Positions 4,615 to 41,405 of a stretch of DNA of 64,000 nucleotides are shown piece by piece. How positions within the stretch are numbered: the first letter of the stretch is position 1; every line of letters starts with the position of its first letter. The notes below the pieces were generated by a model. The model saw nothing but the letters and a program-made list of their open reading frames with translations, ran no database searches and was not told where the DNA came from. The translations under genes and the position numbers were made by a program. The stretch is taken from assembly GCA_024704765.1 (NCBI GenBank), contig JAKMXF010000315.1, positions 1 through 64,000 of the forward strand. Reading direction: 5' to 3'. This DNA is from Oopsacas minuta (lineage: Eukaryota > Animalia > Porifera).

Positions 4615-5405
4615 ATGTCCGCCCCTGATTTTATCATAGTACAAAACATGCCACGAGTTTCTAAACGTGGCCGGAAACGGCACTTTGACGTTGCGCGGAA
4701 GCACCAGGTAAGGCAGGACGAAACCAATGATGAGCGCACTCTCCGCTTGCAGCAGATGCGTGATCGCAGATTATTGCGGGTCAGAGTTCAGACTCTTAAA
4801 TCAAAAGGGAAGCGTCTCCAAAGCAGCGAGAGCTTAATAGACTGCGCTTGAAGGAGACCCTAATCAAGAGAAAAGCCCGACTCAAACATGACTGGTTAAC
4901 AAGATTCTCTGTTGAAGCTGAAACTTGCGCGGTGACTCGATATGAGCGAGAGTCAGGCTACCCGGCTGACTGATGAGACTGGTGAAGACCGAGAGCTTTG
5001 ACTTCGTGATATGAGTGAACGTTAGGCTGCTCAGCTATCTCTGGAGGCGAGTGAAGACCGTACTGTCCGTCTTCAGGATAAGCGGGAATATCAGGCTACT
5101 CAGCTATCTATGGAGACGAGTGAAGACTGTGGTGTCCGTCTTCATGATAAGCGAGAACGTCCAGTCTCTTTGGAAGCATTTTGACGGTAAAACAGGTCCT
5201 TGAGAGAAAGGTTCATCGAAATGAGTTGTATTTTAATAAGCGTGAATCTCGAGTTTCCCATAATTTTTCCAGATCACTAATTGCCTGTGATATTCCAGAT
5301 AGTCCTGTGGATGCACATTCATGTGGCAGTTTTCGTTTAAGCTGCTCTGTGTGTCTGGCTAAATTCTGGGAGGGGAAGAAGATTTCGTGTGGTTCTGTTG
5401 TATGA
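4615..5405 (+). pseudogene. Helitron RepHel N-terminal region relic: charged repeats plus a Cys-rich motif
   Basis: ETNDERTLRL-type repeats, 69-bp period repeats starting at 4956, 5025 and 5094, then CSVCLAKFWEG..SC resembling the Helitron zinc-finger region; frameshifted. Confidence 0.6.
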
Positions 5406-5781
5406 GGATTCAACTACTTCTATTATAACAACCATGAGGGTTAACTACCTTCAATTTTGGCTCATAACTGTATACTTCCTATTACACATCAATAATTATG
5501 CATATTTTTTTCTGGAATTATAATACTCTACAGGGAAAAGCATATTGTGTTCATAAAACAACTTGATTTTAAAATATATTGAACATAAGAAATCAGTTTG
5601 TTGTATTGCCTTAAACACTCTTTGTGCTTATGGTTTTTGTTCAAATCCCCTAGCATTTATTCAGGGAAAGATCATATTCAAATAGGAAGCAGTTAGTGTT
5701 TGTTGATAATAAAAACTAGTTTGTATAATTATGAAAAACCAGACGGTAATACAAAATACAATTATTATTGTTATTCCAAAA

Positions 5782-6330
5782 CTATAGTATCGCTAAAAGT
5801 GAAGAAGTTATTGAGGAAGGATATCGACTATAAATGAAGTCGATTACTGGTTCAAAGTGATTTGATGAGTTCGTTAAATAAATAGCTGTATTGCTGTATT
5901 TGTAATATTGAGAGCTATAGCGATACCACGTCCAGCGACATTCATTTTTCTTGACATCATTGTGTAGATTGGCAACAAAAATGTCAACTTCAAGCATCTT
6001 AAAAAGCTATTATCTCCACATCTGATTTTCAAATGGCATCTGTATCCATGCTAGACTTTTCAAATACTGAATAGGGTGACATCTTCAAATTATGTCGCTA
6101 GATATCAAGAAATATAGCTTGCACCCTGAACAGCTATAAATCGGCAAATTTCCCACGAATTTTGAAATGCTCTCTTGAGATCACGATGTTAAGATAGTTG
6201 ATAAGGCACAAAATAGACAGTTTCCATCCTCAACAATTTCTAATTTTGATAACTGTATGAGTTCGTCTATCTCCTCACCCAAATACGCATTTTCTTGTAT
6301 TAGAGCAGTTTCATGAGTTCACCCAATTTC
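5782..6330 (-). pseudogene. OTU-like cysteine protease domain relic
   Basis: Minus strand gives IVEDGNCLFCALSTILT (DGNC at 6217-6228), then SDVEIIAF-KMLEVDIFV and IYLTNSSNHFEPV; Asp, Cys and His positions match the OTU fold; stops and frameshifts present. Confidence 0.7.
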
Positions 6331-33028: not shown

Positions 33029-33769
33029 ATGAACACTGATCCTGATCAATTAGGTTCTCCTCTTTATACAGTTCCGCCCTTTGTCTACTTCAACTATATT
33101 TTCCCTTCTTTCAGCTTTTTGCAATTATTAGTTCTAAAAAGCGTATGTAAACTATGGCAGAATTTAATAACCACTTATTTTCATCATTACTTAAAGGTAC
33201 TGGATTTTAATGGCGTTGAGCATCTCCTGGAAAAGGATAATTTTATTAAGATAATTCGCCAATTTTCGAGAGTTGAAGAACTTAGTCTATATCAATGTTG
33301 GAAAGCTGTTGATGCTGAATCTGTATCAATATTAGCGTTTTGTCTTCGAAAGTTGGTTTATTTAGACATTAGTCATTGTAGAGGGATAGATAATTCCGGT
33401 TTATCATCTATTGCTTTCTTTTGTACAGCATTGACTGAGATCAATCTGAATAATTGTTATAATATCGACGATAATTCAGTTATTCAAGTTTCTCTTGGTT
33501 GTACACATTTGAGAATTTTTCATGCATGCTCATGTTTCGGGATTTCAAACTCCTCTATCTGTTTTCTGCTAGATACATGTCCTGATCTTTGCTATCTTGA
33601 TATTGCTTATTGTTTACACATTTCGGATAAATTAACCCGTCATATTATAGACAAGAACTCAACTTCCCTGAAGCTTCTTCGGTTAACTGGGTGTACTAAT
33701 GTTTGTATTTCACAGATAAATTTGAATATTCTTATTAATTTAGGTATCTTTGTGAATACCTGTTTTTGA
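33029..33769 (+). CDS. F-box/leucine-rich-repeat protein, single exon, 246 aa
   Basis: N-terminal F-box-like IFPSFSFLQLLVLKSVCKLWQNL followed by about six Cys-containing LRRs (LDISHCRGIDN, INLNNCYNIDD, LDIAYCLHISD, LRLTGCTNV). Confidence 0.85.
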   Translation: MNTDPDQLGSPLYTVPPFVYFNYIFPSFSFLQLLVLKSVCKLWQNLITTYFHHYLKVLDFNGVEHLLEKDNFIKIIRQFSRVEELSLYQCWKAVDAESVSILAFCLRKLVYLDISHCRGIDNSGLSSIAFFCTALTEINLNNCYNIDDNSVIQVSLGCTHLRIFHACSCFGISNSSICFLLDTCPDLCYLDIAYCLHISDKLTRHIIDKNSTSLKLLRLTGCTNVCISQINLNILINLGIFVNTCF

Positions 33770-34000: not shown

Positions 34001-34845
34001 TCTAGGACTATTTAGAAATTTCTTTTCTTTGTGCACATCAAAAACAACGAATATTCACAATGCGTTGTCGAAAATATCTTATTTAAATAATCGTACACGA
34101 TTACCATATTATAACCGCTGAAGTAAGTTTTTGGGAATATTTAGAGATTTTATTCTGTGGCTAAACAACAAAATTTAGTACGTTTTTGACAATCTATATT
34201 TGCAATCAGCCAACAAATCCTATAATACCTGTGAAACGAATTCACTGCATAATTTTGCAATATCATCTCTAAAGTGTGAAAATATGTTAATCTTGTGACA
34301 ACAAGTATTTGTCTCATGTTGTTTACAATATCATATTCGGAATCAGAATACTCAGTTACCCCGAAGTAATTGTTTACTTTGCCTATATTTAGGGCATTGG
34401 AATCTAGATCCTTTTAGAGGATCGAAAGAGGATTGTCGATCCATTTGAAAATAGGATCGTGATCGGGATTGGATCGATAATTTTCTGAAAAGATGTCGAG
34501 CATTCCAAATATTTACAAGTAGTGCTATATTCTTAATTAGGTAGGACTGACTAACGAGCACAATTTGTTGCTAACTCTAAACTCTCAATTCTATCTTCAT
34601 GCTTCTATTAAATTAGCTCAATGATCCACAATCCAAAAGGAAGAGTAACAAATAATGGACAGTGTAAACCTGTTTCTCTAATATACCAGGTGTTACATCT
34701 TTAAGTATTTCTCAGGTAGTGAATAAATTACATATATTGCCACAATGTTTTCTTACTACACTTGCCTCAAATTGCTGTTAGCAATACCGGTTTCAGCTTA
34801 TGTAGAATGAAATTGTTACTATATACTAACAATATTTACGGTATG

Positions 34846-36138
34846 CAGGGTGGCTCTAAAGTTCTGATATAAACCATTTTGCCTATAATATTTTTCAGCA
34901 TGACCTACAACATTGATAATCTATATATAATTAATACATACTATTAGGAAGAGACTGCCTAGTCATTTTTCAATATAACCACCCTTCTTGGAAATGACAG
35001 CCCTGAGTCTGTTCGGGAATCCTTCTACTGAGGAACGCAGAGTTTCTTGGGGTATCTTCTCCCATTCTCGACACAAGGAAATCTTTAGAGAGCTAACTGT
35101 GTTATGTGACACAGAACAAGCCTTGTTTTCCAAGATAGACCATACAGAATAGTCCATGGGATTTAAATCGGGATTGTATGGTGGCCATTCATCCTTGTGT
35201 ATAAAGTTGGGAATATTGTGCTTCAGCTAATCTTGGGTCGTATTGGCCGTATGGGCGGGAGCACCATCTTGTTGGAGGACAAAATGAAAACATGGTCTGG
35301 CTCAGACCTTTTACCACAGGCTCTAATACAAGCTCTTGGTATGTTTTGACATTGATTTTCACTCCTGGGGGATGAAAATCAGTGGTGTCCGTCCAACAGC
35401 AGAGACCCCAGCCCAAACCATCACCGACAGCGGTTTCTTCATCCGACATATATCTGAACTTATCAGGGATCACTGAAACTGAGGTCGAGATGACTCTGTC
35501 GTTTTGGCTATTTGTAGCCTCTTCAATGGTGAAAATTTTCTCATCTAAGAAAAGGGTATTTTCGAGAACCTCAATAGCGTGTAGAGCAAGTAGGCTCTTG
35601 CTCCGGGACACTCTCTTTTCTTCACCGACCCAGATAGGAATTGTACCTTTTGCGTTTAAAAGAGCGCATTCCTAGGTCCCTTTTAACAACCTTTTGTATA
35701 GCTCGGCGAGATATATTGAGCTCCAAGGCCATTTCCTCATCGAACGGTGTGGGTTCCGCCGAATCCGTTCTCGCACCACTTTCTTGAGAGCTGGGTCGTT
35801 ACAGAGCATTGACGACCAGACCTCGGCTTGTCTACAGTGTCCCCAGTTTCCTTATATCGATTTATCGTCCTGTAGATAAATGCCCTACGTCCTTTTGCAA
35901 TATTCAGCAGTTTCAAAATTTCTGAGGGACTTTCCCACCACATGCAACTCAATAATTGCTGACCTCTCAGATTCTATGGTCAATCACAATATTTTTCGAA
36001 ATAGTATACACTAAATTGAAATAATATTTGTTAGGAAGCGTATAAGGTATGTCATGGAGGAGCAAACCATTGAGAATACTTCCTGATAATGGTTGTATAT
36101 TAATTGTGATTTTGTATCAGAACTTTGGAGCCACCCTG
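34846..36138 (-). mobile_element. maT-type (DD37D) Tc1/mariner element, 1293 bp, dead transposase, copy A
   Basis: CAGGGTGGCTC TIRs at both ends; LDEKIFT..SQNDRV, QDGAPAH then 37 residues to PMDY; TAG at a conserved Trp; inner flank TA (36139-36140), outer flank mutated. Confidence 0.95.
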
Positions 36139-36492
36139 TACATATCCATTCCCTTGCAAAAATTTAAGTTTCGCACATATACGATATTCAAAAATACTAT
36201 TCGTCAATCATTATGACCGCTAAGTTGTAACATAAAAATTCGCTATTTCACACTACCAAGCCATTGTGCATTCGGATAAATCGGGTTCGAAGTCTTAGAG
36301 TAGGAGAGTCATTTTTCGTGAGTAGCAGATTCATGTACACTATGGTTAGATAAAACGTGCTTAATACGAATATCTATATTATTAAGAACTCAATTATTGT
36401 ATTTGTTTGTTTGTCCACTTTGTATTATAATCACAAGGGTAATAGATCTATGTATAGAAAATTTATCCCTCTGTTGGCAATGTAGGTAGGGC

Positions 36493-38727
36493 CATAGCCT
36501 ACTATACATAAGGCCTCACACTAACAATTGAATATAGACCAGAGATGGAGTCCCCGATCTACTGTGAAATGGTTATTTCTTCTTTTTTTGCCAAATATGG
36601 TCAAACTTAGTCTACCAAACATAAGACTACATATTATTAAGAGAAATTGGGACTATGGATGTAACTGCGGTTGAAAGAGGGATGGATTTTCCATCACTAT
36701 ATTTGTCCAAATATATTTCGTCAGAAATGTGACAATTAGTAATTTAATTAAATAGAAACTATAAGAAAATTGCAATTGAGTCAAATTACTAGTACAAATA
36801 GATGAAAAAGAAAATTATAATATATAGGATCCGTTAGCTGTTCTGCCAATGAAAGTACTAAGAATTACATTTTTTCAACTTTCGCTTCTCTGATCCTTTC
36901 GAAACTACCTTAGAATTGTAATTCTTCACATTATTAGCTATTAAACAAGTCTCTTCAGTGAATACAAGTTTGCGAAGAATAGATGACCTATTTAACTTGA
37001 AGAGGGGCATTGTTCTCTCCAACATCCATTATCAACAGAACACACAAGATCCAATAGAATCTGCCTAGATGATCCTTCAACAAATATCCTCATCAATTCT
37101 GCATTTCCTTCGATAACAGTGAAATTCTTACAATCAGTAATTATGCAATCCAAGACAAGTTCAGAAGGATATTTCAGACCTCCACGATTAGTAAACTCAA
37201 GTAATCTATACTGAAATCCAGTTGATTCATGAATTAGGAAATCCTTATCTTATTAATAAATCTTGACAAAGTAACATGGTGGACTTCGTTTCAGGTATTG
37301 GCGTGCAGCATATCCGGCAATGAAAGCTAATAATTGAATAGTTTGGGTATCACACTCAATGCTGGATAGATCAGAAATTGCACTAGGGAAAGGGTCAAGA
37401 TCGATATCAGTATCCGAAAATAGCTTCTCTTCAGGTGAAAAGGACTGTATAAATTTTTGAATGAATTATTACATAATTTGGAACGATAGGAAAATAGATT
37501 CAGAATATTTGAAACCTTCAGACGAAGTTCAGCTTCTAATATTTGAAGATAAGAAATATGGATAGCATCAGAAATATCAGATTCACTGAGATGTGTTGAT
37601 TTAGATGCTTTACCAAGTATAGTTTCTATTTGACGAAAAGCGCTTATTGAGGTTGCGAATCAAACAAGGTTCTCTATTACAATAAGCTCTAACAGATAGA
37701 TCGGAATGTACTATTAAGTACATATTTACAAGGACATCAGTATTTACAAGACTTGGGCGGATAAAAACAATACTATTTGGCTCAGAATGCCATAATGACC
37801 ATGTTTTAGACAAGGAAAGCAAAGGTAATTAGTCTGAAATATTTGAAAACTACGAATTTTGAAGTTATCTATTTCTTCAGCTTCTGATTTCAAGCTAAGT
37901 GTCAACGTTTGGTTGAATAGTTCATCATCTCTTAATTCTAGGGGACGCTTGCGCTTAGTATTCGATTGGTAGTATGATAGACAACCTGGTAGAAACACTG
38001 GTACAGCGCCATCTTTCAGCTTGGTGATGACTCAAGGGATTTGACGAAAGGTTCCATCTCTATTTGGAACTTTGTGACTGTATTCTACATCCACTCCGCG
38101 AAAAGGTTAACACAAACATAACAGACTTCAATTCATCTAAATCATCCCTCCGAAGAGCTCTAATCCAAGAATGTCTGAGTTAAGGTGGTTTATTAGGTAA
38201 TTTGAATACAGGTACAGTTTCGTAAGTAGATTTGTAGTAGCTTTTGCAACCAGGAGCGGAGCAGCAATTAGGCATTATTAATAGCAGCTATCAACACTCA
38301 ACAGTGGTAAAATGCTAAACTAAGCAGAAAAAAGTTAATAAATTAATTAAATACGGATATCAGTAATACAAGCACCCACACGAGAAAAGATCAAGAGTGA
38401 CAGAATTCGAACAACTGAGTATCAGAATAACTATAGGACGACTGAATAATTTTTTCTAATTTGTTTACATATTAAATGTATTTTCAATTGTTTTGGTTAG
38501 ATAATAAACTAAATATTAAACCTTATGGTTCATTAATAAACCCAGCATGTAATTGCATCCGTGGTCCCAATTTCTCTTAATAATATGTAGTCTTATGTTT
38601 GGTGGACTAGTTTGGACCATATTTGGCAGTAAAAAGAAGAAATACCCATTTTCACAGTAGATCGGGGACCCCATCCCTTGTCTTTACTTAAATTGTTACT
38701 GTGAGGCTTTATGTATAGTAGGCTATG
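36493..38727 (-). mobile_element. Internally deleted Galileo/P-superfamily element (THAP + transposase C-terminus), about 175-bp TIRs, 7-bp TSD
   Basis: Ends CATAGCCTACTATACAT and ATGTATAGTAGGCTATG; flanks GTAGGGC and GTAGGAC; THAP domain from ATG at 38275 (MPNCCSAPGC..F.LP..W..R..GAVP); C-terminal FIAGYAARQYL..C and NRGGLKYPS; catalytic core not seen. Confidence 0.85.
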
Positions 38728-39030
38728 GTAGGACATTAGACGATTCTCAATTAATGGAATTAGGTCATATCCCAATTATTGGCTGAACTTATGATCGGTG
38801 TTGCCGGCTCCTATCCTAAATTCTGAAGGATTTACGATCCCAAATGATCCTATTTACGATCCTCTAATTGATGATCCATTTTTCGAAATACAGTTTAATA
38901 TTTTGAAAACCATAGTTGGACAGTCGCCTACAAGTTATCTATTCATATATACATTTACGGTACATCATTTCACTAAGTGCTACCATGAATATTAAGTGAT
39001 TCTCTGTCGGTCTTTTGAGCAACTCTTATA

Positions 39031-40323
39031 CAGGGTGGCTCCAAAGTTCTGATACAAAATCACAATTAATATACAACCATTATCAGGAAGTATTCTCAAT
39101 GGTTTGCTCCTCCATGACATACCTTATACGCTTCCTAACAAATATTATTTCAATTTAGTGTATACTATTTCGAAAAATATTGTGATTGACCATAGAATCT
39201 GAGAGGTCAGCAATTATTGAGTTGCATGTGGTGGGAAAGTCCCTCAGAAATTTTGAAACTGCTGAATATTGCAAAAGGACGTAGGGCATTTATCTACAGG
39301 ACGATAAATCGATATAAGGAAACTGGGGACACTGTAGACAAGCCGAGGTCTGGTCGTCAATGCTCTGTAACGACCCAGCTCTCAAGAAAGTGGTGCGAGA
39401 ACGGATTCGGCGGAACCCACACCGTTCGATGAGGAAATGGCCTTGGAGCTCAATATATCTCGCCGAGCTATACAAAAGGTTGTTAAAAGGGACCTAGGAA
39501 TGCGCTCTTTTAAACGCAAAAGGTACAATTCCTATCTGGGTCGGTGAAGAAAAGAGAGTGTCCCGGAGCAAGAGCCTACTTGCTCTACACGCTATTGAGG
39601 TTCTCGAAAATACCCTTTTCTTAGATGAGAAAATTTTCACCATTGAAGAGGCTACAAATAGCCAAAACGACAGAGTCATCTCGACCTCAGTTTCAGTGAT
39701 CCCTGATAAGTTCAGATATATGTCGGATGAAGAAACCGCTGTCGGTGATGGTTTGGGCTGGGGTCTCTGCTGTTGGACGGACACCACTGATTTTCATCCC
39801 CCAGGAGTGAAAATCAATGTCAAAACATACCAAGAGCTTGTATTAGAGCCTGTGGTAAAAGGTCTGAGCCAGACCATGTTTTCATTTTGTCCTCCAACAA
39901 GATGGTGCTCCCGCCCATACGGCCAATACGACCCAAGATTAGCTGAAGCACAATATTCCCAACTTTATACACAAGGATGAATGGCCACCATACAATCCCG
40001 ATTTAAATCCCATGGACTATTCTGTATGGTCTATCTTGGAAAACAAGGCTTGTTCTGTGTCACATAACACAGTTAGCTCTCTAAAGATTTCCTTGTGTCG
40101 AGAATGGGAGAAGATACCCCAAGAAACTCTGCGTTCCTCAGTAGAAGGATTCCCGAACAGACTCAGGGCTGTCATTTCCAAGAAGGGTGGTTATATTGAA
40201 AAATGACTAGGCAGTCTCTTCCTAATAGTATGTATTAATTATATATAGATTATCAATGTTGTAGGTCATGCTGAAAAATATTATAGGCAAAATGGTTAAT
40301 ATCAAAACTTTGGAGCCACCCTG
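39031..40323 (+). mobile_element. maT-type (DD37D) Tc1/mariner element, 1293 bp, dead transposase, copy B
   Basis: TA flanks at 39029-39030 and 40324-40325; same motifs and same lesions as copy A; ORF-track translations are identical between the copies. Confidence 0.95.
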
Positions 40324-40609
40324 TACTTACCATCTAGGCATATGGAATTATTTTTTAGAGTAAATTAATGTTGAAGAATAGATTTGTAACACCCAAATAT
40401 AGTAAGAGTAGTCATGATAGAGTTTAGCGTGATTTAAGGATAATTTGTAAAAATTATGTTTATAGTTTGAAAATCTGTTATATCCATACCATGAGATGGA
40501 CAAATATTCTCAAAACATGATTCAATAGTAGGTTACTTACTCAACAGTATCTTTTGTAAGTGAAACCTTTCGTAATGTACAATTGGATAATGCCTGACCC
40601 ACTTAAAAT

Positions 40610-41405
40610 ACGGCTACATTTTTCTCCGAGATGGCTTAAAAACGAAAATGTGGTATTACCACATATCTGGAGAAATATGTCTGCTAGAGCTTAAATGTGT
40701 ATAAGTGACATAGGAAGATGATATCAATTTATGCACTTCAGTTTCTTAAAATATGATATAACATCATGCGGTTTCGCGGAAGCTATTTTTAAAGAGAAAA
40801 TGCTGCTTTTTCAAGTTGTTTTTAAACCATGTTTTCAGTGTTTTAATGCTTGACAGTTGAATATAATGACAAAGGCAGATAGTTAATTTGATTAAAATGG
40901 TTGGTATGAATGGAATGTGAACACATTCCTGTGTTGCTAAGGAAATGTTTATCCCATTGTTGAGACTATGACTCAAAAACTATGAGTCTTGTAACTCTAA
41001 AATTTATACCAGTAGTTCCATAATAGTCAACTTCTTATTCGCTAAAAATATAATTCATTTGCTTTTTGTTATTTCTATTTAGATATTTTGACATTTACTG
41101 TATAGATGGCAATCATATACAAATATGAGAAACTTCAAAATATTTCAAAAGGTAGTGACATAATAGCAAATGAACTATATTATTCGTAATATGAAGTTGG
41201 CTATTATGGAACTACTGTAAAAGTTTAGAGTCATAAGACTAATAGTTTTTGAGTTCTAGCCTCAACAAATAGAAACACATACTTTGCTACCATAATCCTA
41301 TAGCTCACTAATACATACTTAAGCTCTATCTTACAAATTTCATGAGATATGTGGTGGTAATACATTTTCAGTCGGCTTTCCATATTAAGCCATATATTCA
41401 GTAGG
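40610..41405. repeat. Long imperfect fold-back element
   Basis: Arms such as ACTCAAAAACTATGAGTCTT versus AAGACTAATAGTTTTTGAGT, and GTAGTTCCATAATAG versus CTATTATGGAACTAC, centred near 41110. Confidence 0.65.

Follow-up and report, generated by a model that had tools for sequence, protein, structure and literature searches.

Recombination between nearby inverted copies of a transposable element (TE) turns round the DNA that lies between them and gives the copies a deceptively young appearance, as in Ty elements and pairs of long terminal repeats. In Drosophila, P-element replacement by gap repair copies the interior of an element from another copy, whereas the extreme termini remain resident. 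As far as the published accounts deal with arms and spacers, the human Y palindromes P1-P8 and the palindromes of primate X chromosomes experience gene conversion from arm to arm and occasional inversion of the spacer (PMC3723533, PMC8600007, PMC8327919). We analyzed a 64,000-nucleotide stretch from the glass sponge Oopsacas minuta (positions 1 to 64,000 of contig JAKMXF010000315.1, assembly GCA_024704765.1; hereafter the window), in which two dead copies of a Tc1/mariner transposon, A and B, form an inverted pair. Like the sex-chromosome palindromes, in the respects covered by those accounts, the pair consists of inverted arms round a spacer, and the identity between the arms is far above that to any other paralogue. 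Unlike the sex-chromosome palindromes, whose arms extend over tens of kilobases to megabases, arose by segmental duplication and contain genes, the A/B arms are 1.3 kb long with one dead transposon each, were made by transposition and hold no functional genes, so that no selective role is implied; they also lie on an autosomal-type contig. Compared with the known cases of TE-mediated inversion and ectopic conversion, the A/B locus appears to combine flip and homogenization at one site, with a 26-bp tip that was left unconverted up to a sharp limit. The pair is a new example of a known process rather than a new kind of system, and we consider it probable that a local hop made the twin and that recombination between its arms then homogenized it.

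We compared copy A with the reverse complement of copy B base by base and searched the window for inverted repeats. The search returned two arms (34846-36140 and 39029-40323) of 1295 nt each, 2888 nt apart; the inner TA is counted within the arms, and the element proper is 1293 bp long (Table 1). The arms are 99.8% identical and differ only at 34857, 34864, and 34871 (partners 40312, 40305, and 40298), whereas 34872-36140 comprises 1269 bp with no A/B difference at all. A preliminary description of this DNA had estimated the identical interior at ~1265 bp and had placed three substitutions at positions 12, 19, and 26 of the outer terminal inverted repeats (TIRs), next to a mutated outer TA; the exact comparison reproduces these observations, and the frameshifts and the TGG-to-TAG stop it had reported are present in both arms, the stop at codon 258. 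The outer target dinucleotide of A reads TG (34844-34845), the remaining three junctions of the pair read TA, and the homology between the arms ends precisely at the element termini, with none beyond. The transposase open reading frames (ORFs) of A and B diverge outward, in a head-to-head arrangement. Were the differences placed at random along the 1293 bp, a clustering of all three inside the 26 bp at one end would have p = 1.4e-5. Within the outer 99 bp alone the contrast is 3/26 versus 0/73 (Fisher p = 0.017), and the rate of the tip applied to the core predicts ~146 differences where none is seen.

Table 1. Features of the A/B twin, its spacer and its flanks (positions in the window)
Feature	Position	Strand	Remarks
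Repeat R, left part, outer flank of A	34402-34843		70-77% matches at many loci
Outer target dinucleotide of A	34844-34845		TG, mutated TA; TA at the equivalent point in other R copies
Copy A, dead Tc1/mariner with transposase remnants	34846-36138	-	Frameshifts, stop, HTH_29 and HTH_32 matches
Outer TIR of A	34846-34873	+	Private C12T (34857), common derived T25 (34870)
TGG>TAG stop, transposase codon 258	~35227-35229	-	Also in B, partner ~39940-39942
Inner TIR of A	36111-36138	-	Equals family consensus and inner TIR of B
Inner TA of A	36139-36140		Read from sequence
Largely unique spacer segment adjoining inner end of A	36141-36491		Almost no other genomic matches
Unrelated 2237-bp DNA transposon	36492-38728		TIRs ~175 bp, 89% identical; many copies at 83-88%
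Repeat R, right part, inverted, inner flank of B	38729-39028	-	Matches to other R copies
Inner TA of B	39029-39030		Read from sequence
Copy B, inverted twin of A with transposase remnants	39031-40323	+	Arm comparison
Outer TIR of B	40296-40323	-	Private C19T (40305), A26T (40298); common T25 (40299)
Outer TA of B	40324-40325		Read from sequence

Our genome search covered 61.46 Mb on 365 contigs, and A and B were aligned with 28 other genomic copies (30 copies in total) to polarize the changes. The closest of these other copies is 95% identical to A/B, and no copy above this value was found across the 61.46-Mb genome. The identity between the arms thus exceeds that to the best other paralogue (99.8% versus 95%), which is the pattern by which conversion is recognized in palindromes. 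The alignment resolves two groups, a young burst at 0.5-1.2% from the consensus and older copies at 3.6-6%. A and B lie ~3.1% from the family consensus and have 24 changes in common that are seen in no other aligned copy, and their core has the look of a new insertion despite lying several per cent away from that consensus. Polarized against the 28 other copies, C12T is assigned to A and C19T and A26T to B, in agreement with the polarity that the preliminary description had read from the inner TIR. With changes derived independently in the two tips, three in 26 bp together with the mutated TA, the arms are older than their identity suggests.

The tips also hold a change that the two arms have in common. 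The T at TIR position 25 (34870/40299) is derived in both, every other copy having a C, and a genome-wide pattern search returned no occurrence of the T25 variant beyond A/B. Because T25 sits between the differing sites 19 and 26, the outer tips of A and B appear to share their ancestry. Two unrelated insertions are accordingly the poorer reading, and sisters within one lineage that was already dead the better one; of the earlier proposal that two old copies had been homogenized, the homogenization remains the likely part, and T25 and the 24 private changes speak against the two old copies. An 8-bp frameshift deletion of A/B (around position 440 of A) is also found in L023 on another contig (C233:121363-122654), so that the A/B lineage transposed when it was already dead, with transposase supplied in trans. 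TA at all four junctions (one of them mutated) and homology that stops at the element ends identify both copies as transposase insertions and not as products of segmental duplication. Many dispersed copies identical to A/B, as expected from recent trans-mobilization, are excluded by the genome search, where the best match is at 95%, and by the T25 search.

The flanks of the twin record a rearrangement. R is a dispersed repeat of ~750 bp that was split by the element insertion, and its halves now lie 4.2 kb apart in opposite orientation. In six other R copies (among L059-L064), the outer flank of A joins the reverse complement of 38729-39028 directly, at a TA. Since these two flanks are contiguous there, the spacer appears inverted, with the breakpoints inside the arms: as the assembly shows it, one element would have inserted at a TA in R, and the spacer between the arms would have flipped. 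This is the arrangement left by a crossover between inverted arms, with the orientation read from the assembly alone. With such a flip, the largely unique segment 36141-36491 would formerly have been contiguous with the sequence from 40326 onward.

The spacer itself is asymmetric: some of it is unique DNA, and the rest comprises a 2.2-kb TIR element and a portion of repeat R. We considered whether the inverted repeats at 36492-36664 and 38553-38728 are diverged arms of the palindrome, but they are the ~175-bp TIRs of the separate, multi-copy transposon that occupies most of the spacer. This 2237-bp element (36492-38728) is non-autonomous. A fold-back or segmental inverted duplication is rejected because the homology does not reach past the TIRs, every junction has a TA, and the two sides of the spacer do not mirror each other. 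TA at all four junctions likewise makes models based on non-homologous end joining unlikely, as such joining would not yield TA on both sides of a twin.

We located further inverted pairs in the genome. One twin on contig C332 belongs to a different Tc1/mariner family, whose members are ~65% identical to A. Its copies (L049:901-2206 and L050:960-2261, approximately C332:170400-171705 and 179359-180660) are separated by a spacer of ~7.65 kb and match at 100% identity throughout a core of ~1250 bp (an alignment of 1292 columns), and their closest relatives are at most ~91% identical. The outer tips (44-46 bp) are heavily diverged by substitutions and indels in both copies (~8 and 5 events per ~46 bp when counted by hand, 11 and 17 of 40 columns in the automatic alignment), and the inner ends differ only in the last ~10 bp of the element. 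This second twin, with its identical core and diverged tips, supports the reading of A/B as a product of recombination. Both flanks of its left copy derive from a single repeat copy, and the spacer is thus not flipped, which argues against a one-step, inversion-coupled duplication (replicative or by staggered nicks) as the way in which twins generally arise.

A third twin, on C122 (L071:1994-3306 and 4699-6011, C122:288493-289805 and 291198-292510), is arranged head-to-head around a 1.4-kb spacer, and its arms differ at two positions, 22 and 195 bp from the outer end. We had expected a further homogenized pair. However, its family contains ten other copies at 99-100% identity, so that the twin is merely young and is uninformative on conversion; we dropped it as a case and retain it only as a control for the assembler. 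Each of its arms has an open frame of 280 aa, and the twin shows that such pairs are still being formed.

Taken together, these data probably reflect a Tc1/mariner twin that arose by a local hop and was homogenized by recombination between its arms. One copy would have resided at a TA within repeat R, and transposase acting in trans, for which the young copies of the family with intact ORFs of 342-354 aa are a possible source, would have placed the second copy in inverted orientation at a TA ~2.9 kb away. The pattern suggests that the arms thereafter recombined with each other within the chromosome. Non-crossover gene conversion would repeatedly have erased or spread new mutations, such that the 1.27-kb core stayed identical while it kept drifting from the family consensus at the rate of a single copy. 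The outermost 26 bp may have escaped because a heteroduplex finds no anchor where homology ends; here the tips would have decayed independently (C12T and TA>TG in A, C19T and A26T in B), and, once mutated, would have acted as though they belonged to the non-homologous flank. One crossover or more within the arms would have flipped the spacer, as seen in the assembly. Of the two routes named in the preliminary description, gene conversion between the arms or fold-back copying, conversion is the one best supported, by the 95% nearest copy, the tips, the flip, and the C332 twin, whereas fold-back copying finds no support, given the TA junctions, the homology that stops at the element ends, and the asymmetric spacer.

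Several observations count against this reconstruction. The identity of the arms and the orientation of the spacer are taken from one assembly, apparently made with hybridSPAdes and Pilon. The tips have accumulated four changes in 2x26 bp, compared with 1.0-1.6 expected from the private rate of the core (p = 0.02-0.08), and the C332 tips show a similar, approximately twofold excess over the core rate when tip changes are counted manually. Outer rather than inner ends hold the differences in each of the three twins, a placement that does not follow from a symmetric edge effect. On C307, one old and one young copy form an inverted pair 7.2 kb apart that is not homogenized (92.2% identity, longest identical run 75 bp), one of its members being a recent insertion; homogenization is thus not universal. 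Finally, the pattern does not tell ongoing conversion apart from a single event that converted nearly the full length.

Such a single event is at the center of the alternative that survives best, which we nonetheless regard as unlikely. Two independent old insertions, 2.9 kb apart and inverted, would have been made alike by one recent long-tract conversion or gap repair that overwrote nearly the whole of one copy and spared the outer 26 bp of the recipient. The divergence of the tips (3/26, 11.5%) is near the pairwise divergence of unrelated old copies (up to 8.6%), and in C332 one tip is more decayed than the other, as a donor and a recipient would predict. P-element gap repair would produce the same signature as seen in A/B, identical inside and different at the tips. 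P excision leaves 17-nt terminal overhangs, whereas excision of Tc1/mariner elements leaves only 2-3 nt, which makes gap repair of the P type unlikely for A/B. The genome-unique T25, lying between the unconverted sites 19 and 26, would moreover demand that the tract was patchy or the match coincidental, each of several twins would need to have received a near-maximal tract by chance, and random insertion seldom places two copies of a family of ~65-70 members within a few kilobases of each other.

An assembly artefact, which the preliminary description had named as the main alternative, is weakened by the sharp boundary at position 26, and we now hold it to be distinctly unlikely. The genome of O. 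minuta was put together with SPAdes 3.9 (--careful, k up to 99), the input being Illumina and Canu-corrected PacBio reads and the subsequent tools SSPACE, Pilon, and GapFiller (PMC10280926). Near-identical arms could have collapsed in the de Bruijn graph, with bubbles from interior single-nucleotide polymorphisms (SNPs) popped, only variants less than k from unique flank kept, and the spacer orientation possibly arbitrary. The tip differences that survive in the twins do lie less than 99 bp from the boundary (at 26, ~46, and 13 bp). However, the identity of A and B begins at position 27, inside the 99-bp zone that is immune to collapse and in which the 3/26 versus 0/73 contrast is found. In two twins, 311 collapse-protected bp are free of any difference, which bounds the divergence of the core below ~1%. 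Collapse itself would need a true divergence of ~1% or less, and the contrast with tips diverged by 11-30% would thus persist. The assembly also keeps 82 private interior SNPs, evenly spread, among 16 young copies that are 99-99.8% alike, and it retains the difference 195 bp from the end in the C122 twin; PacBio reads of several kilobases should in addition cross a 1.3-kb arm.

The A/B, C332, and C122 twins are all head-to-head, with differences biased to the outer, ORF-distal ends, and this bias, drawn from three twins only, is only suggestive. We see a slim chance that it reflects something beyond ordinary conversion, namely that head-to-head twins recur in this glass-sponge genome and that their outer ends decay at about twice the rate of the core and faster than the inner ends. 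Such a bias could come from selection, by an active transposase, of twins whose outer ends are both out of action, or else from a process coupled to transposition or repair and directional from the spacer outward.

It is very unlikely that a very recent local hop simply made identical copies whose outer ends then changed fast by an end-specific process, such as error-prone repair after abortive transposase cleavage or the survivorship of twins with both outer TIRs damaged. Tips that have changed about twice as much as the core rate predicts in two twins, the outer-end preference in three of three, and the existence of intact transposase genes would fit such a scenario, and damaging both outer TIRs would be the least that it takes to keep A, B, and the composite from being excised. 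Solitary copies, however, show no excess of TIR changes, the C332 tips have decayed much further than a recent event would allow although their core is identical, and the sample is three twins only. To our knowledge, no step in Tc1/mariner transposition resynthesizes DNA beyond the terminal 2-3 nt (Mos1 and Tc1 chemistry). Hypermutation of the repeat-induced point mutation or CpG type is rejected for the C>T changes at the tips, because the changed sites lie outside CpG contexts and the core is unaffected.

The element belongs to the Tc1/mariner superfamily, as seen from its TA target, its short TIRs, and a DDE/D transposase with a paired-like helix-turn-helix (HTH). Copies A and B are disrupted by many frameshifting indels and the common stop, and their longest ATG-initiated ORF has 86 aa; pieces of the frame still match the HTH_29 and HTH_32 domains. 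An intact 344-aa ORF of a young copy (L004) matches HTH_32 and HTH_29 above and DDE_3 below the respective cut-offs. The protein aligns with Sleeping Beauty over the catalytic domain (E = 7e-14) and also with Mos1 (E = 6e-7), and the catalytic D and D are in register; as third residue of the triad it has a D located 37 residues past the second when counted by hand, a spacing three residues above that of Sleeping Beauty in the alignment. The TIRs are 28 nt long, are conserved among copies, and begin with CAGGG (135 TIR matches genome-wide), the family comprises ~65-70 full-length copies, and nearly every one of the 30 aligned copies is bordered by TA (it is missing at an end in L016 and L017). 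The earlier designation as mariner therefore holds in the broad, Tc1/mariner sense; mariner sensu stricto (DD34D) is ruled out by the spacing of 37 and by the domain search of the L004 protein, which gave no match to the Pfam mariner model Transposase_1. The transposase looks like a DD37D enzyme of the maT group, an assignment made from the spacing alone. The A/B family shares with maT/DD37D elements the TA duplication, TIRs of ~28 bp, a transposase of ~344 aa, the paired-type HTH, and the 37-residue D-D spacing. It differs in that the best solved relative is Sleeping Beauty (DD34E).

A six-frame search of the genome with one transposase gave 3007 first-look candidates, and the scored matches range from ~47% to 100% identity, with many uninterrupted ORFs of 344-381 aa. 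This suggests several Tc1/mariner families and a very large, partly active load in a 61-Mb genome. Two loci, L042 (C155:629703-631211) and L043 (C305:329689-331197), are 1509-bp derivatives of the A/B family whose ends are 98.5-100% identical to young copies and whose interior has been swapped for unrelated sequence.

The neighborhood of the twin contains two further features. A 246-aa ORF (33029-33769, plus strand) lies ~1.1 kb upstream of copy A and has a weak, sub-threshold match to LRR_6. At 40945-41280 we find a foldback repeat or one resembling a miniature inverted-repeat transposable element, with arms (40945-41039 and 41188-41280) that are 80-93% complementary; this repeat family has many genomic copies, which match in both orientations.

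If reads confirm the assembly, mitotic or germline conversion in sponges, both its tract lengths and its edge effects, could be measured on the twins. The A/B locus would indicate that in an early-branching animal TE copies a few kilobases apart recombine so often that they remain identical and that the DNA separating them is flipped. Identity between copies would then be unusable for dating such insertions, and inverted TE twins would mark sites at which small inversions may be polymorphic.

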